From: Pavona decussata
Taxonomy: Eukaryota
Reading direction: 5' to 3'
DNA: 64,000 bases
Assembly (NCBI GenBank): GCA_977016875.1
Contig: CDRNST010000175.1
Span: 744,001 to 808,000 of the forward strand
Made by a program: the position numbers and the translations under genes. The stretch's first letter is position 1. Each line of letters opens with the position of its first letter. Of the stretch, positions 11,336-49,069 are shown one piece after another. The notes below the pieces were generated by a model that searched no databases, was not told the DNA's origin, and saw only the letters and a list, made by a program, of their open reading frames with translations.

Positions 11336-12406
11336 ATGAACAACTCCACAGCGGATGTGGTGGATAACAGCCCCACATTTAATACCAGTGGGGCTAATAT
11401 TGCGGCGGCATTTTTCGTGGCTGTTCTGATGTTATTGACGCTCGTAGGAAACATTATGGTGTGCGTCTGCTTTTACTGCTATCGCGACCTCAGAACAATT
11501 TGCAATTATTTCATCATCAGTTTAAGCGCAGCTGACATCCTGGTAGCGCTGTTAGCGATGCCAATCTGGTTGGTGCTACAGTTGACAGACCTGATGGATG
11601 AGAAATCAAAGAATATCTTTCCGAGTGAAGTGTATTTGTTATGGTCCAGTGTAGATATCCTAGTTGGCGTAGCCTCGATTATGAATCTTGTGGCTGTCAG
11701 TTTTGATCGCCACCTTGCCATAACTCACCCATTCTCATACAATGAGTCAATGACCTCTTTTCGTGCCATTGTTATGATCGTTGTGTTGTGGGTCTTCTCT
11801 TTCATACTCGGTGCTCTTCGATTTCCTGCCGCACATAACACGGATTTTCTTTTTTCGTATCAAATGGTGACCGTAGCAGTTGGCTTCGTAATTCCCCTGC
11901 TGCTTATGATCGTCATGTACATGAAAATTTACTTTGTGGCGAGAAATCAAGCGCTACGCATCGGACGTAACTACGCCAAAGACATTAAGGCAACCAAGAC
12001 CATTGCCATCGTAATTGGAGCGTTTGTTATTTGCTGGATGCCTTTCTTTGTTATAGTTATCGTGTTTGCTGTTGACCGCGATTTTCAGCTAACGATTGAG
12101 TTTTACAAGGCAATCAAGTGGATGGAATACCTCAATTCCTGCTTGAATCCAATCATCTACACCTGCTTAAACCGAACATATCGTCGCGCCTTCAAGAAAC
12201 TCCTCGTTCGTTCAAGATGCTGTTCAAGACTTGGCTCGTCTGAGCCTCTAAATTCCGCTCAAGCCACTCAAATGTCCTTTCACAAAACGAAGGGAGCGGA
12301 ATCGTTGTCTCACAGTTCTTCTTCCATCTCTGAGAACGGAAATGTCTGCATCACAAGGAATGACCATGCAGAAATAAACAATAAAGTACAGGGGACCTGT
12401 GTGTGA
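11336..12406 (+). CDS. Class A (rhodopsin-like) GPCR, biogenic-amine-receptor-like, 356 aa
   Basis: Seven hydrophobic segments; GN (TM1), SLSAAD (TM2), Asp3.32, DRH, CWMPFF, NPIIY; N-terminal sequons NNS/NST/NTS; polypyrimidine acceptor AG at 11315-11316 just upstream of the ATG. Confidence 0.96.
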   Translation: MNNSTADVVDNSPTFNTSGANIAAAFFVAVLMLLTLVGNIMVCVCFYCYRDLRTICNYFIISLSAADILVALLAMPIWLVLQLTDLMDEKSKNIFPSEVYLLWSSVDILVGVASIMNLVAVSFDRHLAITHPFSYNESMTSFRAIVMIVVLWVFSFILGALRFPAAHNTDFLFSYQMVTVAVGFVIPLLLMIVMYMKIYFVARNQALRIGRNYAKDIKATKTIAIVIGAFVICWMPFFVIVIVFAVDRDFQLTIEFYKAIKWMEYLNSCLNPIIYTCLNRTYRRAFKKLLVRSRCCSRLGSSEPLNSAQATQMSFHKTKGAESLSHSSSSISENGNVCITRNDHAEINNKVQGTCV

Positions 12407-13190
12407 AGAGGACTTGATTTCGCAGTGCGTTTACACGTTTAACATCAGTTTGATTCACGATCAACATCAACAACGTTAATTTTCTACAAGGTTCAAAACG
12501 GACGATTGCCTGTGGCAAAGTGAGGAGTCCCACAAAAACTCACAACTTCAATGTTGTTGATTAATTTTATTGAACAATAACCAAAAACAGTAGATGGCCG
12601 CAGACTACAGGCTAACCAAAATGTTTTCTAGATGTGAATATGCCATATTACACTTCGTTGTAGTCGGTAATGACGTTGAGTACAATGATTATGTAATGAC
12701 TATATCCGAAAGATGCTTAGATCATACTGAACAGGTGCAGGCCAATTAAAAAAAGACTAACAACTTCGGAGCCGACAAAATGGGCCGCTTGGAGTACAAA
12801 AAAAAGATGAAAAATTACCATTAATGTTTATTGCGATCTCATCAGTATTCAGAAAACTAGCATGAAAAGTAAAAACAGAAAAGCTTGCTGTATCAGACAT
12901 TACAACTTAAACTTAGACTGAAGAACTTTAGCAACAGTGTAAAATTACGCAGGGGAAAACGCATATATAAACAAATATTCCACGTAAGCTTTAGGTTTTT
13001 TAGTTCACTTTTCATATCGCTTTCAAATAGAGCGGAAAAGGAAGCTAGGACAAACTCCATAGCTATAAGCTAGGACAAAATATAAACTGTCAGATTATAT
13101 AAGTTCACTAAGCCAGAATGTTGACATGAAAATTTGGTTAAACGTCAGACTGCTGATGGCGTGAATGTGTTCTGAATATGGTGGTAGCGT

Positions 13191-13374
13191 NNNNNNNNNN
13201 NNNNNNNNNNNNNNNNNNNNNNNNNNNNNNNNNNNNNNNNNNNNNNNNNNNNNNNNNNNNNNNNNNNNNNNNNNNNNNNNNNNNNNNNNNNNNNNNNNNN
13301 NNNNNNNNNNNNNNNNNNNNNNNNNNNNNNNNNNNNNNNNNNNNNNNNNNNNNNNNNNNNNNNNNNNNNNNNNN
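13191..13374. other. Assembly gap
   Basis: Run of N. Confidence 1.
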
Positions 13375-13686
13375 CATCCCATTTGAGAAAAATTAAACCA
13401 GGCTCTCCATGAAGCACCTTTTCAGCGGCTATAAATGACAAGTTGATGCAAGTTAATTTTTGTTAGAAGGTAAAGGCTACAAACATTATTCTCGATGTCC
13501 GGGTTATTAAGCTGCGTGCACTGCGTTGCAACTGATAATTTGTGACTTAAAACACTGTGACATTCAAGAGCCTCAGCTTAAACGTAGCAAAACATGCTAA
13601 CTTACTTTTTCTCAAAACAGTAAAAGAAAGTAGCACCAGAAGAGAGTGCTGTGCAATATTATTCATATGATCTCAGTGCAGATTTA

Positions 13687-13888
13687 GGTTGCGTTCGATT
13701 GACCGTGTTCCCGAATAGGAATAATTGGAATAGCTGTTAGATTTCTCTTTTAAAGTAAATTTGGGACTCCATTCAGTTTCTAAAAACTTTCGCTGATACC
13801 CGATAATTTAGTCATTTTGTACTCAAGTAACTTCAAAAACCTCTTATGAGGAATTTCTTGTCATCAATAGGGTCAATCAAACGCACCC
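13687..13888. mobile_element. PIF/Harbinger-like MITE
   Basis: TIRs ggttgcgttcgattgacc / ggtcaatcaaacgcaccc flanked by TTA on both sides. Confidence 0.75.
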
Positions 13889-14877
13889 TTAAAGTTAGAA
13901 ACAGATTTCGTGGAGCGTGTTGCTGTACTCTCGGAGTACCCTCAATCCATCGAAACTGAAAAACACATCACAAAAAAAACTTTTCTAAATAATAGGTAGC
14001 TATGAATAGCACTTTATACACTTCGTCAATTTGTAAAACAAACTCTTTCATAATTGTTTAATTGCGTTCGACGTAGAAAGAACGCACTCCTAATACAGAT
14101 TGGAGTCTAGATTGTATGGGACAGTCGATCGATCAACGAATGGATCTTGGGACGCGTATCTGGCATCCCCCGCAGATTTTGCTGGGGCGGATGACATCAT
14201 CATCAACTTGGCAGAGACTGGGATAGAGAGCATCGAACGCACTCCCTATGTTTTGATTATTACCAGTTGTAGGAAGAATTAAAGCTTCCCAAGCTACAGA
14301 AAACTTGATGGGTTTTGGAACTGCATAGATTACAAATATACAACGTTTGTTGTTGAAATAGACACAAGAAGTAGACATTTATTTAAAATGGATGTAAGCT
14401 TAGTTTACAATTTGTTAATGGATATTACACTTTAGAGTGAAAATGAGAAAAGAAAATTTAAAAAAACAAATTTTAGTGCATCTGTCACTATTTAGCCATG
14501 GGGGGGGGAGGAGTCGAAGTGTTGTGATAGGTATTTTGTGGGATGCTCGTTAGGAAGGCATTTACTACACATTTAAACGGATTGTCTCTTTCCAGTCAGA
14601 AGTATTCACTGAAATTGTCTAGACGTTGCGAAAATGACCTAAGATTTTAATCGACGTTTAAAGTTCTCATAGATTCAAAGGAACGAAAATCACCTCTTGC
14701 ACAGGGAAAGCCCTATTAATGTCATCATTGAACTGGACTCCACAAAAGAAAAACCGGAGAAAAGTGGAAATATACGTATGTTGAAGAAAATTACAAGGAA
14801 AGAATTGAAATTTCGACGACTATGCCAAACACAATTCCAAGAAAACGATTACTCAAACGTTTCCAGTTTTCCGGCAC

Positions 14878-15825
14878 TAGCCTGCGTAGCTGGTGTAAAG
14901 TTTTGGAGGCGGAGCCGCTGGAAGCGAGCGGCGAAGCCGCGAGGAGAATAGGGAGGGGGACTTTGAAATACCGCCTGCACGAAAACCATGGGGTTTTGAA
15001 TAGCCCGCACACCAGTGTGCGGGAAAAACGGATTGGTCGAGAGAAGTACACACGTCAATCAAATGTTAGATGATCCCTCATATATTTCCCAAGGGACCCT
15101 TTGCTTTGCTTATGACAAACAAAGCGTTTAGAATGATCGACTTCGTTTGGTCGTCGAAAGAACAGTGCGAATCAATATGGCCATTCGGATTTACAATCAA
15201 TACTTTAGGGTGAGTGGTCTGTTTACCTACGGAACCCGATAAGGGTCACGAGTTGTCGCTTCTATTCCTGGAGGGACATCATTCTATTACAATGTGAGAG
15301 AGGGGGTGGGGTTGTCAGGAAAAATTTAAGAATCTAAAAGAGGTTTGTTACACTTTGTTAGCTTAATAGTTTTTTAAATCCCCCTCCCCCCCGCGTAATA
15401 TATTTTTCCAAGTTGTCGCTTCCTAGTTGTCGCTTTCAAATTGTCGCTTACATGTTGACGCTTCCAAGTTGTCGCTTCCGAGTCGAGTTGTCGCTTCCGA
15501 GTTGTCGCTTCCGAGTTTACTGGCTTTGTAGGCGTATCTCCCTTCGATGCAAATTCTCTGTTATTAACGTTATCCGCCAGCGCCATGCATGCAACAACAA
15601 CAAAGTGTACGACGGTGGCCTTCATTCGCGCGAAAATTGTCGGTTCTAATTGGTTGGTTAATGGGATCAGTTGAGGTCAATGAGGTGATAAAAGTGGGCG
15701 GCATTCAAAATACTCAAGTTCTCTGGCAGGCGGTATTTCTCGCGGCTTCGCCGCTCGCTTCTAGCGGCTCCGCCGCCAAAACTTTATTTCGCGCGCGCCT
15801 ACGACACCGCCAACTAAGCAAGCTA
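14878..15825. mobile_element. ~950-bp non-autonomous DNA transposon (TAGCCTG-type termini)
   Basis: Long imperfect TIRs: tagcctgcgtagctgg...gcggagccgctggaagcgagcggcgaagccgcgag vs ctcgcggcttcgccgctcgcttctagcggctccgc...ccaactaagcaagcta. Confidence 0.8.
15411..15517. repeat. 14-bp minisatellite (agttgtcgcttccg), ~7 copies
   Basis: Directly visible tandem units inside the transposon; one further isolated unit near 15250. Confidence 0.9.
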
Positions 15826-18273
15826 TTCTGGCACCATTCTTTCTGAGGGCATTTAATCTCGCGTACTTTTTTTTTTCTTCAATCGCAAGAATCACGAAAA
15901 TTAGCACGTAGGAAAATACGTTAAAGTAAGGTAGTTGCTTCAGGTTACAGGTGAGTCAACGGAATTGATAGATTGCAAACGAACTATACAGTACCTATTA
16001 TATCTAAAAGCACAAATAAAATTTGTCGCCAAAATTTCTGACTGTTTTAAAAACACTGCCACGTTTAATTTCTTAAAAGAGCTGATAGTTATTGGACAAA
16101 AAAATTACTTGAAGCTTGTAATCTTTACGGGAAACAAACCTATTCTACAATTTTGTACGATGCACATCAAAAAGCCCGCTATAAATAAACGACATCCCGA
16201 TGACGCAAAACTCCTTGATTCGTTTGGCTACCATGATGGATGGTGTTCGCTGATGCTGGGTAAACTTTGCTTTGCCCCTTTAAAAATTTGTCCAAACCTA
16301 CCCTGGTTGTCATTTGTCATTTTATTTTCGGACGTCACCAGGTAACTCAAACGTCCAACAACGTTTCACCCCGGTAATCCGGATTTCCCGGGAATCCAGG
16401 AAATTTTTGCCAGTGGAATCTAGAATCAAGTTCCTTGACAGTGATTTCCTAGCCTCACACGCAGTCGCATTTAAGGGATTCGTATCACCCTCGTCTCCAT
16501 GAATCGATCCAAAATCGACACAAATAGCCAGACTCCAAGGAGGTTCAGTCCCACTGTTTTTACTCTTATATTATAATACAAAATATGAAACAAGAAACAA
16601 ATAGTCGCGCAAAGGAGTTCAGGTGGGTATTTAATAATTAGTCGTAACTTTGCCGTTTTTCTCCCATAAAAAGTTTAATAGTTCGCTGTTACGTAACGGT
16701 TACCGTGATGGTAGCATTACAGAGGTCAACATAAAAGGCTTGTAGAGCTTGGGCTAACCATAGCGACATTACTTAAACATCTTCATTTTCTTTTTTCAAA
16801 CATATTAAACTTTTCTTTGTACATGCTTACTTTGTATTAAAATTATGTTTTGGATATTAGCTGAGAAAAGATATCATGGAAGTTTTCATCAGCCGCAACT
16901 CAAGCCAGCTATGAACTAAACCTTCCAGGGATCCTGTAAATAACCAAGGTTCGGAATTTGAAGCCGTATGACTACACGTTTTGCCAATAGAGAAAAAGTA
17001 CGCGCGCGTGAACCAGTGTCATTTTGGCGGGAAAACGAGATAGCCGTCGTCATTTTACTACGAGTTTTTGTGAGAACGGCGTAGTGGCGAAAACAAGTCA
17101 TTGAAACGTAGGTGATCTCGTCTTGATTTTGAGTCACGAAAGAGCTTAGCTATCAATCTTCAAAAGAACTGCGTCAAGTTCGTCGCTCAAAATAAAAAAT
17201 AAATAAATAAATAATTCTGGGACCTTTCAGGGGTTGTTTTCAAAATTTTCCACGATGGCAGCGAGTAAAATGCGAGCAATGAACAGGTAAAAAAACAAGA
17301 AAACAAGACCAAAACGGTTTTAATTCTGGTTTTAATTCATGACATAGTATGGCAAAATTGCAGCTGGAACTTGAACATTTCGAGTTATGAAAACTGGTTA
17401 AAGACACCCCGTCCGCGTTCTTTCTTCCAAGCGACACAAGCGTCCGGTAGGTATGATTCAATTACACGAGTTGCTTGATTAAAAACGTTGTGGTCTCCTC
17501 GGATATTTTGTCTCCGTTGTACTATGATTTACCTTTTCATTTGTGTAAATTAATTAAAATTGTATAGCTGTTGTATAAATGTAGCGTACTTGGCTAAAGT
17601 ACATTCGTTGGAAAGTAACATTACGTTAAGGATGTTGAGTCAGCAACTTACAGTGAGAAAATTTATCCTGCAGTCCTTTTTCCCGTTTGTCAAAGCGACT
17701 AAGTCGCATTCGCAAAAAAGAAATGATATATTTTTATACAGGTGTGCATCTAAAACAGGGATATCGCTTTGGACGAACGATTGATACATTAGGAGATAAA
17801 TGTTACATTTCTGGAAACTTCAATTGACTACTGACAAGTAATTACAAGAACAAGAGCAATGAAACTTAAATTTTTCCTAATAAACTTGTTCCCTTTTCCA
17901 AAAATTGACAGCAGCGGAAGGTATGAGTCAATTACACAAATTGATTGAAATCTTTGTCATCGCCTATCAAATGCGCTCATTTTATTTTAATTATCTCCAT
18001 ATATTGAATTATACAATTAAAATTATATAGATGTTGCATACTTGACTAAAGCATAGAGGACACCGACTTTATGCCGAGGATATTGATCCACTAACCTTAC
18101 GATAAGTCTTCTTTAGAGGTCAGTCTAATGAACAACTAATGTTGATCGCATCATATTCCATAAGGTTTTATCTCTGTTTTATTTTACAAGCAAGGTTCCA
18201 GCCATTTCAGGGGCTTTTGACGCAGATCTAATTTTGATGGAGACGCTAACACTGCCAACATAATGACAACCTT

Positions 18274-18528
18274 GGTTGCTTACCATTTACATGGAAAACC
18301 CGGAAATTCCGGTTGGAAAATCAAATGATACGCATCATTCCACTTGGAGTACTTCTGAAATTATGGGCTTCTGGTCAAAGTGATATATTTTTATTACTCG
18401 TTTTAGGATTTACAGCTGATGTTCATACATTTTGCATGTTATCCATCTTCTGTTAAGACGAGCTAACTCATTCCGTATTTATGCCGAAAATTTCCATCCG
18501 GGCGGTTTGCGTACTGATGGTAAGCACC
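18274..18528. mobile_element. MITE
   Basis: Termini ggttgcttaccat / atggtaagcacc with the internal palindrome ccggaaattccgg. Confidence 0.65.
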
Positions 18529-20756
18529 TCTCACCCTACATTTACGGTCCGGGATTGGTTTCATCTCGCGTTCGGGATATTTGCTTCTTAGTGTTTACAT
18601 GATTCCCGAATGAAATGATGTAAACAAGATACTTTTTTCTCCATCCCGTGAAAAGACTTTAACGTAAACCGGCGTCGCTTTTATTTACAGTTGTAACGAT
18701 GACATACATCTGTAATCAACACTTTTTAAACCAAAGAAACGCAAAACAATATTCAGCGTGTTCAAAACTGTGTTATTCACAACTTTATCGGACAGTATTT
18801 AGCAATGTCAAACCCTTCATTGTTTGGCGGGTTCACCCTGGAGTGGGCCAACTCCCTCAAACCCTTGTCAAATCGTGAAAAAACTTCTCCCGTTCCGGCC
18901 CAAGCATAACTAGCTGCCAGTCTGCTCATCATCGCCTCCGTATTAAAGTAAGTATACTATCAGGTCTCTCGTGTCTGTGCCTTCTTCCGATTAAATTTGA
19001 ATTTACAAATTACGCAACGATAACATCGCCGGCATGTTCCGACCGGCAATACGTTGCTTCCAATGACGAGCAGGAACGACAGAAATACGTGCTTGACGTT
19101 GCGATCTAAACAAAACACCAAGAATTGCGAAAGCCTACACGAAAACATTTCCTGGGTAAACAAAATGTGACGTTTTTGCAAACAAAAGGGTGGCCAGAGG
19201 CAGTGGCATCATTTCAGCCCTGTATTGAAGCAACTGTTGATTTGATCTTATTAGCTCTTTGGTAGTTGGGATTTTAAGAATCATTGTCGCACAAATCTTT
19301 TGTTTATGACAAATATTGTTTGGTTAAGGGATTTTCGGCTGTCTGCGTTACCTTAACTGTATTCCTTGGGTGCTATTACTCGCGTACGATAGAAGCCAAC
19401 TTTTACAGTCCTTGGGTGAATGAATGAACCACTACTGCCTTCCACAACTGCTGCAGCTGAGAAGCCTATTTTGAACTCGTTGCTAGGTAAGTGTTGATTA
19501 AATTTAAAATATTTGAGATGTGTCCAGAATATAGTCCCGGTTATGTTTACACTGCATTAATTAGTTTTAAATAAGCTTGTAAATGAATTGCTGATCTGGG
19601 TTATAAATGACCATGAATTAAATAACTGTCTTAAAGAAGTGTTAATGACAGTTTGAAGTAGGTATACAACCAATCAATTGCACAGAAATACTATCAGTAC
19701 TTTAACTACGTATTTCTAAGATAGGATCTCTCGGTATCTTCTACTTTCTCCATTTTCGCCACAAACCCATATGTATACTGCCCTCAGATACATGTCCACA
19801 CTTTCTTTGGCTAAAAGCTAAACAACTACAACTGAATCAAAAGCAAGTGTTGATCATACAGTCAAGATTAACAGAAGATTCTCAATCTTCAGTCTTGCGG
19901 CTTAAATAACTTTCTGCTCCAGGCCGGGACCTGCTGGTCGTTACCAGTGATCTCTGATGTGAATTATTCAGGTTAGAGATTTCGTGCATACGTTAACTTT
20001 AGTTTTAATAATCTTATGTACAGTAGAAGTTCATCGAAATGCTGGTGCGAAAATATTTTCTTACCAAAACAAAAACAGTTCCTTCGAAAATAACAGGGTC
20101 AATCGCACATCAAACTGTTTCGCTCGCACGCAGATTCCTAGGGACTCAGGTCATGTTTTAACAATAGTATGCTGTCTTTTATTTATTTTATTTGTTACGT
20201 TACCGCGTCAAATAATACTACGACCACCTGAACTCTTAAAATCATTTCTCGTGTTTCGAATGTAAATTTAGCAACACCAGCGAGCACTCCTTAAAATGCT
20301 TGTGGACGAGCGGACTAGCGACAGAGTCGCGAGTCCTGGTAAAAACGGACTTTAAGAAAATCTAGATTCAATCTACCGATGAACATCATTCAGTATACGT
20401 AGAATATCGTTCTTTCGTTTTCCAACATGGTTTGTTTAAATCAACAAAGTTTGATCTGCTAAGACTCTTTAAATCAATATTAAATAGGCAAAAAATTTCA
20501 GAGAACAGGAGAAATCAAGAGAAATTGCGGCTCATACTCGATTGAATCCCCACTCTCACCATTTTACGCGCCTGCCACGAATTAACGAACCTATGCAAAC
20601 CCGTAACCGGATTAACCGCGTCAACATACATTTGTTGACATTTTCAGCCCTCGAAAACAAATAACGATCCGTTTACAGTGAGGTACCCTGAGTGCACGAC
20701 GGCAAACAGAAAATCAATAGAATATATGTGATGGTATATTTTAAGCCTGGTGACTG

Positions 20757-21063
20757 AATGAGAATGATGTATTATTCAATGACACAGGCATACTCGGAAA
20801 AAGGAAATCCGAGTGCTCCTATTAGGAGTCGAGCCTAAGACCTCCTAGTTCGGATGCTCTACCACTGAGCTACAGGAGACTCGTGGGAGCTAAGGCCATT
20901 AAAGACCATTAAACTAGGTTCAAGGGACAAACATCCTGCATACTGCTAGGATTGGAATGTGATTTGTGGCATACGCACAATAAATGAGAATGATGTATTA
21001 TTCAGTGAGTGACCCAGGCATACTCAGAAAGTATGCCTGTGTCACTAAATAATACATCATTCT
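20757..21063 (-). repeat. tRNA-containing interspersed repeat (partly tandem, with foldback end)
   Basis: Reverse complement of the unit at 59872-60020 (tagctcagtggtagagcatccgaactag); a second unit starts ~20983 and folds back on itself. Confidence 0.8.
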
Positions 21064-25673: not shown

Positions 25674-25700
25674 TGACCCACGCACTGACCCACGCACTGC
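25674..25700. repeat. Short tandem repeat (cccacgcactga), ~3 copies
   Basis: accacgcactgacccacgcactgacccacgcactg. Confidence 0.7.
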
Positions 25701-36747: not shown

Positions 36748-36814
36748 CGATCTCGCCCCCAGGGTCCTCTCTCTTTTCGGGTGAGGTAAAGAGAGGGTCC
36801 TGGGATCGAGGACG
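36748..36814. mobile_element. Very short MITE/hairpin
   Basis: ctcgcccccagggtcctctct / agagagggtcctgggatcgag imperfect inverted pair. Confidence 0.55.
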
Positions 36815-37369: not shown

Positions 37370-37478
37370 AATGGTAGAGCATCCGGACCAGTAAACGGAC
37401 GGTCATAGCTTCAACTCCTTTTGGGAGAACTTGGATTGTTTCCAAATATGCTTGTGTTCCTGACTGACAAAATACATC
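37370..37478 (+). repeat. Degenerate copy of the tRNA-containing repeat
   Basis: tggtagagcatccggaccagtaaacggacggtcatagcttcaactccttttgggagaacttggatt aligns with 59939-60004. Confidence 0.65.
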
Positions 37479-40400
37479 CTTTTCAAATTCGAAGCTCTTT
37501 CTAACTTTAAAAAATAAACAAAAGATAGAAAGGGAAAACTGCTTAAGGAAATAAAAAGTGTTTGCCATTTGTTGATATATACAACTTTTGTTCGGCCTAT
37601 AGAATACACTTCCGTGTGTTCGCATGCGTTCCGTCTCAAAACCTTAATCACTGTTCATTGTATATAGGGAGTAATTTGTTCCATATTTGCAACCAATTTG
37701 ATTTAGCCTCAGAGATGACCAACACATCAGTGTAACGCAAACATCGTTTAGCCAAACAGCCTTTTCAGCCAGAAATTACAACTTGCCAGTAACTATTATT
37801 GCTATTTCCATTTGGGCACAGGCGGATTTATTTTCAAAAACAAATCAAACTGGACGACGACTATTTATCAGTAAATCTCTGCAAATCTCATCTTAATACT
37901 CCCAGTTGCTTTTACGACACAGAAAGTGTGAAATTCGAAACTTTATTATACTTAATTTATATTGTGAATCCACCGCAGGAATAGAGCTATTCTATGTTAG
38001 CAGATTTCAAATGTTTGGTCATTTGAATTAAATTCTGCCGTAAATTGATTGAACAACAATCAAATAGGCGGTGCCCCTGCGGGAGACATTCCAGTCTAAA
38101 TGCAATTGTATATCTAACGCGGGTTTCGAAGCCCAAATATTATTTCAAGCGCATTGGGCGGATTACAAGATAACCGAGAAAAACAGCTCTCGAAACCAAC
38201 ATTGACCAGAAAGTAGTACAGGCTAGGGGAAGGCACAACTCGAAAACTTAAATTTAAACTGGTAGGTTTTGGATTCAGCTCTGTTTTGTTTAATTTTAGT
38301 TTATACTTGCATGTAAGAAATATGTTGTATACAAATTTTGTATAGATTTTCTCATTTAAAAGGAATATCTCCTTAAATTTGAAACGTGAAAAAACTGTTA
38401 TAGGCATAATACCACGGTGATTAAAGATGAGAGGTTACAATTTCAATGTCAAGAACAAACTTGAATAATACCACATATATGTCGAGATATCTAAAAGATA
38501 AGAGATATCTAAATACGACAAAAATAATGAAATAATCCGGTGTCCAGTGACTAGTCGATTCATTTGAGCTTGTTGGTGGTCATTTTGCATCGCTTGCATC
38601 CTTACATGTTGATCGGAAATAGAGTTAAAAGTTGAAATCTCTAGACGCTTTTCATCAAATAAATAATTAAAATGTAAATTTAACTTAGAAAAATACTTTC
38701 CTGTTTATGCAGTTTGAACGGCTGACTGAAAGCGACAGTGGAAAGCAGAGTCGAGGTGAAAGCAACTCAAAAGCGATGTGAGTACGAGAGATCATTATTA
38801 CTATTATTTTGCGTATTTTATTTGAACTAAACTTAACTGTTCCTAAAACTATTAACACTTACTTGTAAAGAATATCAACTATATTTTCTGGTTTCTGAAA
38901 TTGTGTGACACTTTTTAATCAATTTACTCGTATTTGCTAACGCAACGTGCAGGTTTTAGATCGACATTAACAATCACGCTTCTTAAATTATTCGTCCGTT
39001 CACTAGCCTTTTCCCCTCTTACAAGATGAAACTATAGATCGACGTTTTTAGGTTAATCTCCCTTCCTAAATGCTAAACATCCGCTAGCTTTAATCGACTT
39101 GATGTGTCAGGCATTTCTAATTTTCAAAATCTACGTTCGGCCACCACGGAATCTCAAACTACATTGTTGACTTCCATTTAAAACGAGCACCGGTTTCCAA
39201 ACCTTGCAATTATTCGATATGATTGCCTTCGTGTTTTTTTAGTGACACAGCATGCAGCCTGAGGCGTGCTTTTTTATTTCTTTATCTTTAAAGCACCAGC
39301 TGAAAGCAATGTTTAGATCTCACCCGCAAAACAAGATTCTAGTCTCATTGTGAGTTAACCTTCTCTGTTATTGGCTGCTTAAACCCAGTTTTTATTTTTT
39401 TAATTCCTTTTTCAGAAAAAAACGAAACCACCAAACGTTTGTGCTTGAGGACAACATCCCTAAAATCAACGCAAAATTTCCTTCGAATTTCCGTTATCAA
39501 TAAGGGAACCATATAATATTTCGTTCTCTATGTAGCTTTCTCCTTTGCGAGAAAAGATAGGCAACAATGACAGCAGGACAATAAAAATCTAAGGTCAGCT
39601 GAAACTCTTGCGTGTTGCGGGGAAACATATCAATTGTAAAATGAATTCGTCGCTCGGGGCACCGGTTCGCTCATATCATTGAAGCAGGCATTTGACAGAA
39701 GAATATTACATTGTCTAGACCAGAAAATATTAAATTCGAGTGGGATATTACCAATTTTAAACGAATCGACACTGCGTCATCCGAGGAAGTTCACGTACCA
39801 AGCCAATAATGAACCATAAATGTTGACCAAGTCCACACATAGCCGTTAAATGACGCCCAAGAAACACTGAGAGCGTAATAAACCCTATCTGTGACCATCA
39901 ATAGTGCTATTCAAGTTGAATGGGTGGATAAGGCTGACAGCGGCTGCAAGACGCGACACGAAGGAATGAAGATCTCAATCTCGTAAGTTCAATCAGGTAA
40001 ATTGCGATGAACCGAAATGTGGTATCGACGCTATAAAACCACATTCAGCGACGATACTGAACTTTATAACAAGGCATTCGAGGAGTCCGTTTTTGATTTG
40101 GAGGCGTTCATTAAACCTTTTGTAATTGCTATTGAACAATGCACAACTGTGTGGCACCAAGTCATAATGTCTTCATGCGTTCAGAGAATATTCATTTCCG
40201 GGTCTTTTCCAGACAAAACATGTCTTTATCAGGCAAATCATTTGTTTACGTTAGCGTCATTAAACCACGCCCATGTTACCGGTGCCTCAATTAAAAAACA
40301 AGTCATATTTGGCAATTTTTTTTAATGACGACAAAAATGGCCAAACCTTAAAAGTGCAAAGTATGATGGCCATGAAAATATTTTGTTTAACACTGAGACC

Positions 40401-41436
40401 CTAATGCTCTCTTCGATGACCGTCAATAGCGACAGTGCAGGTGCAGTGATATTTCTGTTTTCAGATTTTTACAGGCGTCTTTCAGCGCACTGCTGTTACC
40501 CTACAATACTCTATTCGTATGCAAAATGAAAATGCTGGAGATACGTTGACAACCTCTGTTATCACGACATTTTACCTCCATAGGCGAACTATATACATCA
40601 CGAAAACTATAATTTGTTGTTTGATTGGTTTTAGTTGTTTCCACGAAACACCCCGCAATCCCTTAGTTAACGATTAGTGTTTAACAAAAGTACACGCCAA
40701 TACGAATGATCCGTCCTTGGTGTAAACTGGGTTGTGCCAGGTCACGAATCCGATACTGTCTGCTCTGATTGCTTTAACTTTCAAAGGTATTTTGCCCTCG
40801 TATATGTTTTAGCTTCACATTGCTTACAGTTCAGTTTAGGCTCCTGATAGGCAGAGGAGAACTTGGAAGAGAGAGGTGTTTTTTGAAAGCGTAATAGGTT
40901 GGATAATTTTTCGTCTAAAGTGATAAAAGACAGCGTCTACATTTTTGCTGTTATTAATATTTTTGGTAAATACCGAGCAAACAAACTTATGCTACTTTCC
41001 CTTTCAGTTGTTTTTTTTTTCCTAAACTGCGGAAAAGGCTATTGTGAAAGCCTCGCTTTCTTTGAACATTTTGTGTAAGGGATATGTGAAAGATTTTGAA
41101 GTCTCTGGTCAGTTCAGAATCTGAAACACGCCACCAAAAGTGGACATGAGGAGATTTGGCGGCAAAAAAAAAGAAAATACAGTTAACAGTTAGCCCAGTA
41201 TTAATTTTTTACCACTTCACCCACTAACTGCCAAGCGCTGACTATGACGTCAGTAAATCATATAGTTGGTAAAGATCTTTGAAAACGTGTCAAATTAATC
41301 ATACGAGAAAGGCAAGGCTGATTTCACGATTAAGGGAATACATTGATTTCAATATTTCGAAAGGCACAGCCTTTCTTTTTCAGGGCATTTTTTGTTATTT
41401 GCTTGACAATTTACTACTAATTGGGTCCTTTACTAC

Positions 41437-41586
41437 NNNNNNNNNNNNNNNNNNNNNNNNNNNNNNNNNNNNNNNNNNNNNNNNNNNNNNNNNNNNNNNN
41501 NNNNNNNNNNNNNNNNNNNNNNNNNNNNNNNNNNNNNNNNNNNNNNNNNNNNNNNNNNNNNNNNNNNNNNNNNNNNNNNNNNNNNN
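41437..41586. other. Assembly gap
   Basis: Run of N. Confidence 1.
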
Positions 41587-41767
41587 CAAACACAGTTACT
41601 TAAAATCAAGAGGAAATTTGGTCCAGTAGCACCTTTTGGTACTTTTCATTAACAATGTCTACTTCTCCCAAACTAAAGAGGCGTAGGGGGTGGGGAGAGG
41701 AGAGGGGTACATGCCAAGATACAGACTTTCGCATTGACTTGACTGTGAACGAATTTACTATTCAGTT

Positions 41768-42370
41768 AGGGCCTGTTTCCATGGAGGGTGGGTTACCGAG
41801 TGAAATGAAGGATGGATTACCGAGTTATCGTCCTATCAGAGCTAAAACATAGCCCGCCGTTACATGTGAAATGTCTAGCCCACCTATCCGGTCTGTGTCA
41901 GCGTCATCGAAGCGTGCTGCAGCATGGAAAAACGAATTACCAGTAAATACATGCTACTAAATCGTGCTTTTCCCTCCATAATCAACGCCACTTGACCTCA
42001 AAACGATATATTTCAGCGAAAATTCTGGAAGAGCGTTTATCCGAAAAATTTAACAATCGAATCAGCTCATATAACCAGTAACCAAAAAATGGGACCCTTT
42101 CTGTTTGAAAGTTACAAATTTTGACAGTGTTTAGTTCATATCTAAGTCAGTCAAAAACATGAAAAACGCGCGTAAAAACACAGCCCAGGTAGCCGCGTAA
42201 CCTTGGCTGGCAGTTTACATACAAAAACGATGACCTAGTGAGCAGAGAGGAGGACCCGGTCAAGCATGTAAACACTTCAGTTTGTTTTGTAAAGAACTGG
42301 GTGAAATATTGACCCGCACAGGGTAGCCGGGTTAGGCAGATCAGCCGCCCTCCTCCTATAAATAGGCTCT
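41768..42370. mobile_element. Degenerate Harbinger-like non-autonomous element
   Basis: Termini agggcctgtttccatggaggg / ccctcctcctataaataggctct, imperfectly inverted. Confidence 0.55.
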
Positions 42371-42532
42371 CAGAAACGATGGTTTTGGAAGCCCGACTTT
42401 CAGCCGCCTCCTCTCGTCGCTTTTTCTAGCTATGTTTTTGGCTGTTTGGTTGCAGTTTACGAAAGCGACGTCAGAAAATGTCATTTGTCGCTTCAAATTG
42501 CAGCGCCTTTTTTATGCAAGCTCAATGGTTTG

Positions 42533-43272
42533 TTCCCTGCTAGCAGAGGTCTCTGACGGCAAGAAGGAGAGAGACCTCTGCTGGCCTCCGACGAATCTTC
42601 TGTCGCTCATGCGCTAGTGTTTCCTGGCAACGACTAACATTTCAGCCGCATGTAACACGAGCTTCGCAAACCGGTTTGCGCGCAAAACAGCAGCCGCGGT
42701 AGGGCAATGTGTGAAATTACTGTTAGCTGTATGTGGAACTGCCACGGACCCCTCAACGACATCGCAAATTCAAAGAACATAATTCTCCATGGACACCAGT
42801 AAACCAGCAGCTGTACGCAAAGATGGAAACTGCCTTTTGTGCGGAGTAAATTTCGAATAAAGCGGCCAGAACACCTGACGATCGCTAAATACAGGAGATT
42901 GGAAAGCTACGGTTTGCGGTTTTTTGGATAATACTCCTGACTTTCAAAAGAAATCTTCACGGCTCTATAAGAAATGCGTTCGCAAAGTAGAATCGCGTTA
43001 ATCAAGCGAAATAAGGATTTGGAAGATGGCAAGCGCGTAACAATTGAAGTGCGAAACTTGTAAACTTAGTGGAAGCCATAACAACTGTGGGCTCAGAAAT
43101 TTCCAGCGTACAATCTGAACAGACCATGCGCATTGCATATTAACGGAAACCGGTTTTGAAAACCGGTCAGTTTCGACCAAAAATCTGGTCGGCGGCTACA
43201 TGAGAGAACACGTCGGGGGAAGGAAGAGGTCTCTCTCCCTTCTCGCCGTCAGAGACCTCTGCTAGCAGGGAA
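42533..43272. mobile_element. Non-autonomous DNA transposon with ~60-bp TIRs and a 9-bp TSD (Mutator/MULE-like)
   Basis: TIR ttccctgctagcagaggtctctgacggc is exact for 28 nt; flanks are aatggtttg (42524-42532) and aatggcttg (43273-43281). Confidence 0.85.
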
Positions 43273-44519
43273 AATGGCTTGTCTCTGTTATCACGACTTG
43301 TAAAGACAATTAGTCTTTAACCATTGGACTTACTAAAAATCAGAGACTGGGTAACACAGTGCCCGTTACAAGGCCTTCAGGCTACCGTACATTTTAAGAC
43401 TCCCAATATGAAGGGGGAAAGGTGCTAGCAGACAGAGGAGATCACTGTTGGTATATGCAAATTATTCTCATCCTGTTAATAACTATAATAAGTCTTTTCT
43501 TTGCTTAGCGTGGGGCTGATTGGCCATATATTTGTCGAGAAACGTCGTAGCACTTGTTATGTCTAGCTTTACTTACGTCTTTCATCCTGCCGAAAACAAA
43601 AACGTTTATTAAAGTTTGCTAATAAAGGACTGTGCAAAGTCAGAGAGAGATTATTTTTAAAACGTTTATAGACTGGCGATGTCAGCTTGACATGAACGCG
43701 AAAACCTCACCCCAGTAGGAAAGCTTAACTCATCACTGATGAGAAAAATTCCGGTAAGTCGTTTGATTCGATATTTCTCTATATACTAAAGAATATTCCC
43801 ATCTCATTTGTTCGAAGTTTAGTTATGTTGATTGGTATAAACCGGCGTCTTTTTATCCGCCTGTCGGGTCATTTATGCTACATCTAAATAAATGTGCATT
43901 ATTCATTGACGCTTAGTCGGAAAGAAAAAGAATCGAGAAGTAAATATGCAATCAGGTTGTTTGTCTCAAAATAAATATGCCACAAATAATGCCAAAGTGT
44001 CCGTATATGAATATCGGAACGAAATTTTTCTGACTCATGATCATTCATGGAATAGTCTAGGAGAAGACCTCGATGTTTTACTTAAGCCGAGAAGTTATTA
44101 CTGCTAAGTCTTCTGCACACAGAAATGTAATCTTGATTGGGATTTTGCTTTGAACGAATTTTGTATGTAGTGTTCAGACAACAAGAAAACTGGTACATAA
44201 CCTTGCAAACACTACTCTTAAATCTGGAAAAGTTTTCACAAAAAAAAAGATGAGAAAAAATACATTGTCCAATATACCGAAAACCAAGAGCACATTGAAC
44301 TGAATATTTTGAACTCTTCAAGGATCAACATGCATTTCTCCTTCGTGTACTCTGTATATTCGCAAATCAAAACATTCCATTTTTGCGATCAACTGCTATA
44401 TTCTCATGATCTGTAGGCATGTTATGGAGAAATGAGCTGCTGAAAATTATTGGCGATTTCCGTCGGGAGGGGTTTCGCTGCTGTAATAATCGGTAACTAT
44501 CGGATTTCCCCCTGTTCCG

Positions 44520-45102
44520 TGATGTTACCATGGCTACGTGTTTCTCCTCTTCTGTTCAAATAAGAGGCCATATCAGGCAATTCGTTAATTACTTGTCGTG
44601 AGCAGAACATGTCGGAAGCGATTTGACACCAAATTAATTTTCGCCTTTCAACGTGCCCTGCTATCGAAAATTCGGAATCAACAGACTTTGTTTCGTGGAA
44701 GACAGCATGCTGTTGTAAAATGAACACGATCAAAAGGAAGATTGGTTTTATAGCACGGTATGGCGGTATACGGCGTAACGCAAAACAGCTATTTTTGCCA
44801 CGAATAAATTTGGCGCAATGCAGCTTTCGCACCCGCAAACCAATAATAAGAATTCATATCATTATTGTTGTAAGGAGTTGATAGTAGAACGTCTTGGTTT
44901 AGCCATAGTAATTGGAATGTTCTGATTGGAGTTTCTGTGGTATATTTAAATTGCGATTTTCATGAGGTTTCTCTACTTTCAAATGTCAACAAAATGAATT
45001 AATGTTTTGATCAATTATCAGATGTTTTTACATTGCAGCTGCCACTGAAAGCAAAGCAAGCAGGGAAGAACGCAGGCAAATCCTTCCACAGGCCTCTTTT
45101 CG
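44520..45102 (+). promoter_or_regulatory. Candidate promoter and non-coding first exon of the second GPCR
   Basis: X-box-like gttaccatggctac (44524-44537), CCAAT and two ATTGG (44840-44929), TATA-like tatatttaaa (44941), donor CG|gtaagt at 45103; acceptor at 47980-47981. Confidence 0.35.
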
Positions 45103-47983
45103 GTAAGTGCACCCATGTTTAAATTTGTCTAAATTGTGTTCGTTTTCTCCACTTTCAACACAAACTCTAACAATTAACGTTATAGCTTTCGGCAAGATCT
45201 GTAAGTAAAAAACATTTACTAAAAACGTGCGCATGCATAAAGAATTGGAAATGTTCAATTATCGAAATAAGTTTTAATTTCTAGTAATGTCTCTTGTACC
45301 AGGCAGGATTAAGCTTTGGCCAGCACTTTGTCAATTATCGCCTTTAATGAATTTTCTCTACCACTTACAAACTAAATTTCGAATGAAACAGAGCGAACAG
45401 AAAATGCTGCGGTTTTGGGGGGATCACTGAAGCTTTTGCTCTGATATCTTTGATCGATGACAGACTCGCATCCTATTTCCTACCAAGTCGTACAGTGCGA
45501 TAATTGTTTCTTCACGTAATTACTATTTCACATAAAATACTACACGGACTACGGAAAAAACTTTAGTAAAACACCCCGTGAGAGAATTAATGAAAAGCAA
45601 ATATATGACAGTCACAGTACTATGTAAGAAATAATGCAAAGTAAACAATTTCACAGGTGATTATTTGTCTTGTTTGGCATTTGTTCCCTTAAAAAGCGTG
45701 AATGTGACTTTTTTTTCGCCGTGAAATTATTTACCTAAAACACAGATATGACATACAAGAGTCAAGAATTCTGCAGACATTTCTGTTAAAAGTTAGCCCA
45801 GATAAAAAGATCAACAAACACGTATATAATAACCATTAGGGTTTTTGAAAGTCGCCACTTCGGGTTATGGTCCAATAAAAATGTGGTCAGGTTTATCTTA
45901 TCTTTCATTGTACATACATCTTCTTTTAATTTTCGTGACCGTCTTAATTCCAAGTGTTATTTCTTATTACAAGCTAACCATATATTTCTCTGAGTCACAA
46001 TAAATTACGTTAGAGGGCATTAAAGACTAGTTTGGAGTTTGGTCCTCAGTACAGAAAGAAAAAACACCAACGCCACTTCACGGCGATCAATCGCAAAAAG
46101 TTAGCGTCAGTTCTGGTTCCCCGTGCCTTGCACGGAAATTTGTATCAGAGAACGGGGTAGGATCTCGGGGTAGAAACAGCTATTTCAATGAACGTTGTCG
46201 GAAAACCTACACAACAAGAATGCAAGGTGATTCGTTAATTTAATAATAAATTTACCAATCTCAGATATGGCACAACCCTGCAGAAAATAAATCACAAAAG
46301 CAAATGTTTATGGTATTTCCTCTGAGAACCTTGAATTACAGCCGAATTTCAAAAGATGATAGCTTCCCATACAACCTTTCTGTCTTGTCGCGTAAGCTCG
46401 AGGCCTGAAAATTCGAGATCGCTAATTGAACCACGATTCCCCTAAATACAACAGCAATACAAAAATTTAAAAACACCATGGGCCAACACTTGGCTTATGC
46501 AAACGCACCGTGAGGAAGAAAATTTTACGCCGAGAAAAAGAAAAAAATGTAAAGCGTTCAGTTTCTATACGTAAATAACCAACTGTCCAGCACTAAACCC
46601 GAATTACATGAAAAAATGAAAAGAAATCACTTAGCTTATATTAACCATCACATAACAACACAAATCGAAGGCCTGTGAAACTTCCGGCCTCTGGACAAAG
46701 AAGCGAATAGTAACGAATGGATCGACAAAGGCGATAACAACTTATTTACGAAATTACTACAAACCTATATCCCGATTTTAGGTTAACAAGAGGCATGATT
46801 CTTTTCGCTTTGTTACCAATTAGTAGTGTCACGCAACGGTAACACAAGAGGTGTGATGGAAATCAAAAATAAAAGTAACACAGTGGCCAAAAGAAACAAG
46901 CGTTTTTTCCAATGATGTTGCACGATGTTTTACTCCTTCCAAATCAAGATCGCGCGCCACATTTTAGTCATTTGGCAAAATTAAAAGCATTTTGCGCGAA
47001 CCATTGGTTGTGCCAGTGGTTTGTGCAAACTGGAAAAGTGAACGAGGAGGGATTGGGGAGAGGGACGAAAAATTAAGACTGCGGAAGTTTCTTTGTTGTT
47101 CAAGTTTCTGAGGAACTCAGTCACTCAAAACATAACAACCAAACGCAATTATCATATTAAATTGATCTTTTCAATGGTTCTGTTGCCTTAAATAGTAAAT
47201 TGCCCGACTATGGAAATAACATATAAGAACTATCAGCTCAAACAAATATTTGTGTTTCACGACCATAAATGATCCATCGCAATGAGAGAAAAAATTTACG
47301 TTTTAGGCAAACTTGAACATCTGATGAAAATATTACCATTTGCAAAGCGTTAACACGCTTGATTCACATAATATACTTCAAGAAAGAAACTAATATTTTC
47401 TAAATGGACACATCTTAACGGACAGCTGTACGGCAGTCGACAAAAATGAATATTTTTGCTTTTATTAAACAAAGTTGTTATTAGCACAGCAAGACTCCAT
47501 CTTTTAATGCCCTTTTGTGCGTTTCACAACAATAATTTCATGGGCTAGAACTATAATACTTATCGCACTAAACAGCAATTTAACAAAGGCTTCCGCTTAT
47601 ACTTTGCTGTTAAACTTCTTTGTACATCAGTTATCGCACATTAGGTAGCTTTGTTCAATCGCATACTACACGTGAATGGTTTTTGGCAAAATCATGCAAA
47701 TTTGCGGCGATTCCGTGTTATGAGCTACCGGTGTCATTAGTTTCACATCGATGCACGTTATTACGACGCACTTAGTGCAAACTAGAGTATATAACAGCGT
47801 ATTTATCCCGCGTTTTCAATTCTTGACGAATTTTGAAAAAAAAAATTGATTAGCAACAACTTTCCAGTCAGCAGCTAGGTTGCATCCGGTCCCGACTTGT
47901 AAGACCCTTGTTTGTTTTCCAGCGCAGGATTAACATCTGTTTATATTTGGACTGTAATACTTTTTGTGTTCTTTGATACAGGG

Positions 47984-49069
47984 ATGGATATAGGAGGGAA
48001 TATCACAACCGCCTCGCCACGTGTATTCACCGATATGTCCACTAAACTGACCAAGATTGACCCAGACGTAACACATATTGTCGCAGCCGTGTTCGTCGCG
48101 CTACAGATTTTAGTTGCTCTTGGAGGAAACTTCATCGTCATTGCAAGCTTTTGCACATTCAGGGACCTACGGACAAAATGCAACTTTTTCATCATATCTC
48201 TGGCAATCAGTGATATCCTGGTGGCTTTGATAGCAATGCCCTTTTGGCTTACGCTTCAGCTAACCAGGAATGACTGGATCTACGACAAGAGACTGAAATC
48301 GTTTTGGGATTGCATGGATATTCTGTGTGGTACAGCATCTATAATGAACCTGACTGCCGTGAGTTTTGACCGCCAATTGGCCATCACATCTCCGTTTGCT
48401 TATCCTAAGATCCTAACGACTCGGCGCGCTATTTACATCATATGCTTCGTATGGTGTTACGCTGTCGCCATTTCATGTTCAAAGCTGATTTCAGCACCTG
48501 AACAAAACTGGCCATATCCAAACTATCTATGGTTCGTATCTATGGTGAGCTTCTTTCTACCTTTGGTAATCATGTTGGTTATGTACACTCGAATCTACCT
48601 TGTGGCAAGATACCAGGCTAAACGAATTGGCAGAAACTACGCCACGGACATCAAAGCCGCTAAGACAATTGCGGTTGTGATTGGAGGGTTTGTGATCTGC
48701 TGGCTGCCGTTCTTCATAATTGTCTTATCGTATGCGAATCGTAAGTCCCCCCCAATCACTTTCCTTAACGTCGCCAAATGGCTCGAGTACTTAAATAGCT
48801 GCTTAAACCCGGTCATTTACACATGTCTAAACAGAACTTACAGAAACGCGTTCAAAAAACTGTTCCGTCGCTGTCGGATGAAAATTATGAGAGATCACAG
48901 GGACCCTTCGACAGGTACGAGCTGGCTGAGCATGGCTGAAACGCACGCGATAACCCATCGGGAGGTATCATCTGATCACAGCGCTCCCACGACTCCAAAC
49001 GGTAGGGCCATTGAGGACGTGAACGAAAACTTACCCCTAAAAGAGAACTTGAGGGAGCCGGAGACATAA
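47984..49069 (+). CDS. Class A GPCR, biogenic-amine-receptor-like, 361 aa; paralog of 11336-12406
   Basis: GN, SLAISD, Asp3.32, DRQ, SMVSFFLP, CWLPFF, NPVIY. Start placed at ATG 47984 (MDIGGNIT), just after the acceptor tttttgtgttctttgatacag. Confidence 0.96.
   Translation: MDIGGNITTASPRVFTDMSTKLTKIDPDVTHIVAAVFVALQILVALGGNFIVIASFCTFRDLRTKCNFFIISLAISDILVALIAMPFWLTLQLTRNDWIYDKRLKSFWDCMDILCGTASIMNLTAVSFDRQLAITSPFAYPKILTTRRAIYIICFVWCYAVAISCSKLISAPEQNWPYPNYLWFVSMVSFFLPLVIMLVMYTRIYLVARYQAKRIGRNYATDIKAAKTIAVVIGGFVICWLPFFIIVLSYANRKSPPITFLNVAKWLEYLNSCLNPVIYTCLNRTYRNAFKKLFRRCRMKIMRDHRDPSTGTSWLSMAETHAITHREVSSDHSAPTTPNGRAIEDVNENLPLKENLREPET

Follow-up and report, generated by a model that had tools for sequence, protein, structure and literature searches.

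The 64,000-nucleotide (nt) stretch of the Pavona decussata genome analysed here (assembly GCA_977016875.1, contig CDRNST010000175.1, positions 744,001 to 808,000 of the forward strand; hereafter the window, with positions counted from its first letter) carries two class A G protein-coupled receptor (GPCR) genes, R1 and R2, whose amine-type pockets combine Asp3.32 with Lys7.39 and Glu7.42. We tentatively favour, at slightly less than even confidence, the view that both are functional receptors, each encoded in one coding exon, in which Lys7.39 would act as a tethered cation at Asp3.32 and any ligand would need to bridge the two residues or break their contact. They are read as functional because their open reading frames (ORFs) are intact and contain the activation microswitches, and because the R1 transcript is spliced. 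The Glu7.42 receptors, whose named members all come from stony corals or sea anemones, appear to form a subfamily inside a large, multi-class cnidarian clade related to monoamine receptors. Judged from the alignments, this clade is marked by Asp3.32 with Lys7.39, the lack of Cys3.25, usually Trp2.61 and Gly3.36, and a polar residue at 7.42 that is usually His. The two genes and the codons that define their pockets are as follows.

11336-12406 (+): R1 coding sequence (CDS), class A GPCR with D3.32/K7.39/E7.42; ORF from ATG, 356 amino acids; PF00001, E 2.7e-50
47984-49069 (+): R2 CDS; 361 amino acids counted from the ATG used by named orthologs; PF00001, E 1.7e-52
11654-11656 (+): R1 D3.32 codon, GAT; numbering from R3.50
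12116-12127 (+): R1 codons K7.39-W7.40-M7.41-E7.42; K7.39 AAG at 12116-12118, E7.42 GAA at 12125-12127
48308-48319 (+): R2 codons D3.29 to D3.32 (D-C-M-D); D3.29 GAT at 48308-48310, D3.32 GAT at 48317-48319
48776-48787 (+): R2 codons K7.39-W7.40-L7.41-E7.42; K7.39 AAA at 48776-48778, E7.42 GAG at 48785-48787

Pocket residues of R1 and R2

Residue numbers were counted from R3.50 (DRH in R1, DRQ in R2) and from P7.50 of the NPxxY motif. Both receptors carry W3.28, D3.32, G3.36, K7.39, W7.40, E7.42 and Y7.43, and they differ at 3.25 (Tyr in R1, Lys in R2) and at 3.29 (Ser in R1, Asp in R2). A preliminary description of this DNA had reported K7.39, W7.40, E7.42, Y7.43 and D3.32 in both receptors together with D3.29 in R2, and it was correct in every detail, numbering and codons included. 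Six-frame translation of the whole window yielded exactly two copies of the motif K-W-(M/L)-E-Y-L-N-S, at 12116-12139 and 48776-48799, both on the + strand, and tblastn of both receptors against the window returned no further copies besides the two genes. The Pfam 7tm_1 domain spans all seven helices in each protein (residues 38-275 of R1 on profile positions 1-260), and the two are 46% identical.

The activation microswitches N1.50, D2.50, R3.50, W4.50, P5.50, Y5.58, D6.30, CWxP and NPxxY are present in both receptors. The disulfide that joins transmembrane helix 3 (TM3) to extracellular loop 2 (ECL2) is absent: there is no C3.25, the ECL2 of R1 has no Cys, and the lone nearby Cys of R2 lies at the end of TM4. 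The D-C-M-D stretch of R2 (D3.29-D3.32) is invariant in all eight aligned sequences, namely R2 itself, five stony-coral and two sea-anemone relatives.

Proposed role of Lys7.39

In the reading we favour, the ammonium group of K7.39 would reach the carboxylate of D3.32 and form a built-in salt bridge between TM3 and TM7. The lysine would sit in an aromatic cage of W3.28, W2.61, W7.40, Y7.43 and F6.51, which in classical receptors holds the ligand amine and which here would be reinforced by W2.61. On the pocket floor, beside W6.48, the 7.42 side chain may fill the room freed by G3.36. A ligand would then not bind in the manner of a classical monoamine. It could be a small molecule in which an acidic or hydrogen-bond-accepting group meets K7.39 while a cationic one meets D3.32/E7.42, or else a cation strong enough to push K7.39 onto E7.42.

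The net charge of D3.32, K7.39 and E7.42 is -1, equal to that of D3.32 alone. With His at 7.42 the triad would be roughly neutral, and Glu would bring it back to -1; affinity for cations may thus have returned in the Glu subfamily; alternatively, its receptors may accept zwitterions whose amine rests on D3.32/E7.42 and whose acid group pairs with K7.39. A wider proposal, that K7.39 is a tethered cation at the amine site throughout the clade and that its receptors are switched by acidic or zwitterionic small molecules (amino-acid-, betaine- or glutathione-like) or by peptides, is possible but doubtful.

A related arrangement is known from the chemokine receptor CXCR1, whose function depends on a salt bridge between K3.32 and E7.39 and whose signalling is rescued in the double mutant with swapped charges, E3.32/K7.39 (PMC10425996). 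CXCR1 resembles R1 and R2 in placing opposite charges at 3.32 and 7.39, and its functional double mutant has their polarity. It differs in belonging to an unrelated branch of class A, in its reversed native polarity, and in the setting of the bridge, which serves structure and signalling below a protein ligand.

Conservation of the signature across homologs

The close-homolog set comprised 118 full-length proteins among the 120 best word-search hits. D3.32, K7.39 and Y7.43 occur together in 118/118 of these, and the signature is conserved far beyond chance. Position 7.42 is Glu in 103, Ala in 9, Thr in 2, and Gln, His, Lys or Gly in one each. The expectation that orthologs would keep K7.39/E7.42 is thus borne out for the lysine, while E7.42 is less constrained and is replaced in several members. 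The preliminary description had named orthologs lacking these residues as evidence against its proposal; because the charged residues are conserved in orthologs, the proposal largely withstands that comparison. Named homologs in this set come from stony corals or sea anemones only (Desmophyllum, Stylophora, Oculina, Montipora, Exaiptasia, Actinia and Nematostella); all statements on taxa rest on named hits, most unnamed hits being without an assignable taxon.

Beyond the close homologs, the next tier of an exhaustive representative search, at 31-45% identity, reads K-W-(L/M)-H-Y, that is, K7.39 with His7.42, and likewise has D3.32 and no C3.25. K7.39 is present in 27 of the 30 best paralogs from the 602-Mb genome of this coral, with 7.42 occupied among them by His (18), Glu (5), Gln (3) or Thr (1). 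A jellyfish-seeded search found K-W-M-H-Y in Rhopilema and Aurelia (Scyphozoa) and in Tripedalia (Cubozoa). All named K7.39-type matches are cnidarian, from Scleractinia, Actiniaria, Scyphozoa and Cubozoa.

The preliminary description had also stated that bilaterian amine receptors have a small residue, usually Gly, at 7.42 and an uncharged 7.39. This holds in our sample, as C3.25, G7.42 and Thr, Phe, Leu, Val or Met at 7.39 were found in 74/74 classical amine-receptor representatives. Named fish, mollusc, annelid and arthropod receptors share the classical combination of C3.25, G7.42 and uncharged 7.39, with the exception of one fish TAAR1 (N7.39, A7.42). C3.25 is present in 100% of the 74 classical representatives vs 0% of 109 rows with the K7.39/E7.42 pair, and none of 290 aligned sequences combines K7.39 with the classical C3.25 and G7.42. 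One row, P0189, pairs K7.39 with C3.25 and has Pro at 7.42.

Other pocket positions follow the same division. Position 2.61 is Trp in 100% of the Glu7.42 group and 89% of the His7.42 group, and Ser or Ala in classical receptors. Position 3.36 is Gly in 100% of the Glu7.42 group, Gly in 60% and otherwise small in the His7.42 group, and Cys or Ser in classical receptors. G3.36 thus accompanies E/H7.42 and C/S3.36 accompanies G7.42, while W2.61 belongs to the K type and S/A2.61 to the classical type. Position 5.42 is Val, Ile or Thr in the Glu7.42 group, Val, Ile, Leu or Thr in the His7.42 group, and Ser in 78% of classical receptors; position 3.51 is His, Gln or Met in the Glu7.42 group, mostly Tyr or Phe in the His7.42 group, and Tyr in classical receptors. 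In TM5, R1 has T5.42, V5.43 and G5.46 and R2 has V5.42, S5.43 and S5.46, vs classical representatives with S5.42 in 78% and S5.46 in 81%.

A small number of proteins in the K-type clade carry another residue at 7.39. In P0151 it is Tyr, and a Lys occurs at 7.42, three residues further along TM7; P0310 has V7.39; and P0161 and P0176 have Ile and Gln at 7.39. These natural variants could serve to probe the role of the lysine.

Phylogeny, orthogroups and gene clusters

Trees were built with FastTree (156 rows) and with an IQ-TREE LG+C20 quick search (88 rows), on row sets that leave out the sequences of Goulty et al. The Glu7.42 proteins, with a few substituted members, form one clade, with a Shimodaira-Hasegawa (SH) support of 99 in FastTree and an SH approximate likelihood-ratio test (SH-aLRT) support of 97 in IQ-TREE. 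The named bilaterian receptors make up a distinct clade (SH-aLRT 95), and R1 and R2 lie outside it, in the separate clade (SH-aLRT 97). The deeper branching order of the K7.39 groups is not resolved; a tree forcing all K7.39-type rows together scores 14 log-likelihood (lnL) units above the free quick tree and is not rejected (approximately unbiased test, p-AU 0.778).

The claim that a K/E pair defines a receptor subfamily is therefore upheld for Glu7.42, which marks a supported subfamily, and needs revision for K7.39, which spans a larger cnidarian clade where 7.42 is usually His. Any suggestion that the pair is peculiar to R1 and R2 or to a small subfamily has to be dropped, given K7.39 in 27 of those 30 paralogs and in the scyphozoan and cubozoan relatives.

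The Glu7.42 clade comprises five well-supported orthogroups, each with exactly one gene of this coral: R1, R2, C175:715148 (-), C175:652400 (+) and C143:3258521 (+). Four of the five include named sea-anemone members. R1 and R2 fall in different orthogroups, and because these are separate and old, the two genes are old paralogs that arose before stony corals and sea anemones diverged. E7.42 is kept in the stony-coral orthologs of R1 and R2, with one exception that has Gln. Among sea anemones, the co-orthologs of R1 have His (Nematostella) or Ala (Exaiptasia) at 7.42, and the orthologs of R2 have Glu (Actinia, Exaiptasia) or Ala (Nematostella). Across the subfamily, E7.42 is replaced in some members by Ala, His, Gln, Thr, Gly or Lys, and K7.39 is constant there. 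The rim positions 3.29, 5.39, 5.43, 7.35 and 7.36 vary between orthogroups and are fixed inside each.

This rim pattern bears on the idea that the receptors have high ligand-independent activity, with the K7.39-D3.32 pair mimicking a bound amine and signalling set by expression level or inverse agonists. We consider this very unlikely. The octocoral receptor Ren1 of Renilla koellikeri is reported to be constitutively active in the title of reference 70 of PMC10533100, and the tyrosine of the DRY motif is replaced by His, Gln or Met in the E subfamily, both of which would suit such a state, Ren1 if it carries K7.39. However, D/E6.30 and R3.50 are retained as an inactive-state lock requires, and the many diverged paralogs with variable rims show a pattern to be expected of ligand discrimination and not of ligand-free signalling.

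A segment of about 140 kb on contig C175 holds four of the five Glu7.42 genes, which the paralog search placed as follows.

G000:C175, 652400-653311 (+): Glu7.42 gene
G000:C175, 715148-716014 (-): Glu7.42 gene
G000:C175, 755336-756403 (+): Glu7.42 gene
G000:C175, 792071-793027 (+): Glu7.42 gene

His7.42 paralogs are clustered on C148 (2.93-3.02 Mb) and C436 (3.60-3.61 Mb). This arrangement invites the proposal that the proteins serve chemosensation, detecting amino acids, glutathione or betaines in the water, and do not respond to an internal transmitter. Cnidarians respond to zwitterionic feeding stimulants, and such compounds would suit a pocket with Lys and Asp/Glu; the coding parts are intronless, the genes stand in tandem clusters (the four E-type genes on C175, K/H-type genes on C148 and C436), and the family is large and lineage-specific. 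The Glu7.42 genes nevertheless fall into five old, strongly conserved orthogroups, and the TM3 stretch of R2 is invariant from stony corals to sea anemones, unlike in fast-evolving odorant-type receptors. A chemosensory role is, on balance, highly improbable.

A separate anthozoan family was also observed, comprising L017 (G000:C65:2105407-2106441), P0325, P0335, P0353 and P0377. Its members have C3.25, D3.32, Y7.39 and Pro7.42, with F-V-Y-V-L-P-L-L-N-S in TM7. The family is strongly conserved from Orbicella to Nematostella and groups weakly with bilaterian amine receptors (SH-aLRT 80); it possibly corresponds to the cnidarian group placed next to the muscarinic receptors by Goulty et al.

Fold and relation to monoamine receptors

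The AlphaFold2 model of R1, built with 56 homologs, has seven helices and a helix 8, with a predicted local distance difference test (pLDDT) score of 80.5 and a predicted template modelling (pTM) score of 0.76. The top Foldseek matches of this model are the beta1-adrenergic receptor (beta1AR; E 4e-14), the dopamine D1 receptor (D1R), the serotonin receptor 5-HT1D and the alpha1A-adrenergic receptor, with template modelling scores by target of 0.80-0.87. By sequence, the best solved relatives are the alpha1A, D2, H2 and beta1 receptors (E 1e-44 to 1e-38). The term aminergic-like is a fair one for the fold and for TM3, TM6 and TM7, and the preliminary description of a paralogous, aminergic-like pair agrees with the identity between R1 and R2 and with these nearest solved and fold relatives. 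In the model, ECL2 is about 8 residues long, between helices 141-160 and 169-209, and intracellular loop 3 (ICL3) has a few residues.

R1 and R2 share with the bilaterian monoamine receptors (alpha1A, beta1, D1/D2, H2 and 5-HT1) the fold, D3.32, I3.40, F6.44, W6.48, F6.51 and F6.52, and they keep W7.40, Y7.43 and NSxxNPxxY. They differ in K7.39 (Thr, Phe or Leu in the bilaterian receptors), E7.42 (Gly), G3.36 (Cys or Ser) and W2.61 (Ser or Ala), and in lacking the C3.25 disulfide, in Val or Thr in place of Ser at 5.42, in DRH/DRQ in place of DRY and in their very short ICL3.

These likenesses and differences bear directly on the possibility that R1 and R2 are ordinary monoamine or trace-amine receptors. 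The amine would then sit on D3.32, while K7.39 would pair with E7.42, a helical turn apart from it, or form an ionic lock that agonist amines break, in the manner of the TM7 lysine of alpha1-adrenoceptors. Porter and Perez reportedly proposed a lock of this kind, between a lysine and Asp3.32, for alpha1B in 1996, and alpha1A has a Lys at 7.36 in our alignment. The retention of D3.32, W6.48, F6.51, F6.52, W7.40 and Y7.43, the adrenergic and dopamine receptors as best sequence and fold matches, and the triad net charge of -1 all fit such a role, and Goulty et al. (PMC10244343) speculate that the cnidarian clade could mediate monoamine responses. By contrast, Ser5.42 is replaced by Val or Thr, the TM3-ECL2 disulfide and the lid are missing, and the genes stand apart from the bilaterian amine-receptor clade. 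Cnidarians also lack most monoamine-pathway enzymes (PMC10244343), and no amine ligand is reported for the Renilla koellikeri receptors Ren1 and Ren2 (Bouchard et al. 2003, 2004, cited in PMC10533100). Taken together, ordinary amine binding appears fairly unlikely.

The short, disulfide-free ECL2 raises another alternative, in which the proteins are neuropeptide receptors that bind a basic residue or a free N-terminus through D3.32/E7.42 and a backbone carbonyl or a free C-terminus through K7.39. Opioid and somatostatin receptors use D3.32 to bind the amines of their peptides. Signalling in cnidarians is mostly peptidergic, and the loop would leave the pocket open. Furthermore, the monoamine-related receptors of Nematostella were left out of a peptide screen and were named as candidates for peptides that lack a receptor (Thiel et al., PMC11087051). 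However, the pocket and TM7 are of the amine type by sequence, and the short extracellular loops and N-terminus offer little surface for recognizing a peptide. We regard this alternative as decidedly unlikely.

A lysine in TM7 also recalls the opsins. In retinal pigments of this kind, the Schiff-base Lys would have shifted from 7.43 to 7.39, with D3.32 or E7.42 as counterion; the Lys of R1 and R2 lies one turn above the opsin position with carboxylates nearby, and relocation of the lysine is tolerated in rhodopsin. The opsin Lys7.43 is nevertheless absent, with Tyr in R1, R2 and 118/118 homologs, and there are dozens of paralogs per genome. With Y7.43, an amine-type pocket, and sequence and fold searches that return amine receptors and not opsins, a retinal pigment is scarcely credible.

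Weight of the evidence for the proposed tethered cation

These alternatives and the tethered-cation reading are not fully mutually exclusive. A direct salt bridge between 3.32 and 7.39, as the preliminary description had envisaged, is geometrically plausible, as the two positions face each other across the orthosteric pocket, and the non-classical ligand suggested there is plausible as well. Several points nevertheless weigh against the tethered cation as we have set it out. The K7.39-D3.32 geometry is drawn from generic numbering and the CXCR1 precedent, not from the coordinates of the model. The -1 pocket charge of the E subfamily is equally compatible with ordinary amine binding. E7.42 cannot be essential for the fold, because some members have Ala or Gly there. 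The associations of 3.36 with 7.42 and of 2.61 with 7.39 coincide with the division between two clades, and common descent, not coupling, may account for them. All members of the clade are orphans. Finally, Ren1 and Ren2 resemble R1 and R2 as anthozoan amine-like GPCRs for which no amine ligand is reported and of which Ren1 is reported constitutively active (PMC10533100), but they are octocoral genes that may or may not carry K7.39.

Gene structure and genomic context

The sequencing runs in which the stretch occurs come from one organism and from samples labelled 'coral metagenome'. The following features relate to the R1 transcript and to the continuity of the assembly.

4722-4753 (+): R1 5' untranslated region (UTR) exon, 3' end, non-coding; RNA contig match, donor GTAAGG from 4754
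4754-11316 (+): R1 5'UTR intron, 6563 nt, GT..AG; RNA contig spliced from 4753 to 11317, acceptor preceded by a polypyrimidine tract
11317-13108 (+): R1 coding exon and 3'UTR as far as contigs reach; contigs of RNA runs X5 and X9
13191-13374 (no strand): assembly gap, downstream of the R1 3'UTR; run of N, outside both CDS
41437-41586 (no strand): assembly gap, intergenic, 6.4 kb upstream of R2; run of N, outside both CDS

A contig of run X5 aligns to 11315-11840 and carries 108 extra letters upstream, the last 30 of which match 4722-4751 exactly and uniquely in the window. The genome has splice sites at both ends of the interval, with AG followed by GTAAGG at 4753/4754 and ttttccatttcAG immediately before the 11316/11317 junction. 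The interval 4754-11316 is a canonical 5'UTR intron, and R1 is transcribed, since a spliced contig can arise only from RNA. Read exon by exon, the frame leading from the upstream exon into the R1 ATG contains a stop with no ATG after it; therefore the 356-amino-acid R1 CDS is complete within one exon, and this exon alone served for the searches. Contigs of runs X5 and X9, with starts at 11261 or 11315, reach 13108, which gives a 3'UTR of at least 700 nt that ends before the gap at 13191. Runs X19 and X20 yielded no R1 contig, which is not proof of absence.

Within the 3'UTR, contigs of the two independent runs X5 and X9 carry 11 other letters (TAACATCAGTA) in place of the 91 bases at 12836-12926. 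This difference looks like an indel allele and not a GT-AG intron, as it ends AT..AC. Contigs of runs X9 and X5 were also located inside the 5'UTR intron, at 9500-10218 and 10888-11061; they could represent unspliced RNA, another transcript or carry-over of library DNA.

The R2 frame is open already from 47912 (ORF 47912-49069). Just upstream of the ATG, at about 47916-47923, a pyrimidine-rich acceptor-like site (ttttccag) is likely a splice acceptor.

Both assembly gaps fall between the genes and outside their reading frames, so the continuity and frame of R1 and R2 do not depend on them; the spacing of about 36 kb between the genes is an estimate, since the two gaps intervene. In Desmophyllum pertusum, the genes corresponding to R1 (locus tag OS493_022826) and R2 (OS493_022824) lie on the same 1.40-Mb contig, and further homolog pairs were found together on shared contigs. 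These independent contigs of other assemblies support R1 and R2 as true neighbours.

The window has three long ORFs, those of R1 and R2 and one at 61219-62652 (-), downstream of R2. The last encodes 477 amino acids with a reverse-transcriptase domain (PF00078, E 1.9e-32) and is probably a fragment of a retrotransposon of the long interspersed nuclear element (LINE) type. Pfam searches matched none of eight ORFs of 102-136 amino acids, of which seven lie between the genes and one immediately upstream of R1. The sole array in a tandem-repeat search is intergenic, at 15406-15517, with 7.6 copies of a 14-nt unit and 78% matches.

Relation to published receptors and implications

Goulty et al. (2023, PMC10244343) described a large cnidarian-specific clade beside the canonical monoamine receptors, whose function in their words "is yet to be determined". 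The K7.39-type clade defined here fits that orphan clade, as judged by homology. R1 and R2 are 44-74% identical to named anthozoan entries, the named members are cnidarian only and have no known ligand, and the published clade, like R1 and R2, stands apart from the bilaterian amine-receptor clade with no difference in kind. The genes are ordinary members of an already published clade; the present analysis adds the pocket signature and divides the clade into a His7.42 majority and a Glu7.42 subfamily. The searchable full-text literature returned no description of this signature in cnidarian receptors, and of the papers listed there for K7.39 or Lys7.39, one concerns chemokine-receptor design and the other CXCR1.

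The named members from Stylophora, Exaiptasia, Actinia, Montipora and Nematostella carry NCBI labels such as 'alpha-1A adrenergic receptor-like', 'tyramine receptor 1-like' and 'dopamine receptor 2-like'. Labels of this sort are unsafe for these coral and anemone proteins. Ligands have been found for placozoan amine receptors and not for cnidarian ones (Yanez-Guerra et al., bioRxiv 10.1101/2025.04.18.649542), and true monoamine signalling in cnidarians is disputed (PMC10244343 vs bioRxiv 10.1101/2025.04.18.649542).

These observations are valuable for the hypothesis that they make testable; they do not reveal a new kind of system. A pocket signature shared across the clade would redirect screening towards acidic, zwitterionic and peptide ligands, basal activity and point mutants. 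If the tethered cation is real, it would explain why cnidarian amine-like receptors stayed without ligands in amine screens, and it would mean that a 'proto-monoamine' receptor ancestor shared by cnidarians and bilaterians gave rise to two chemically different ligand systems.

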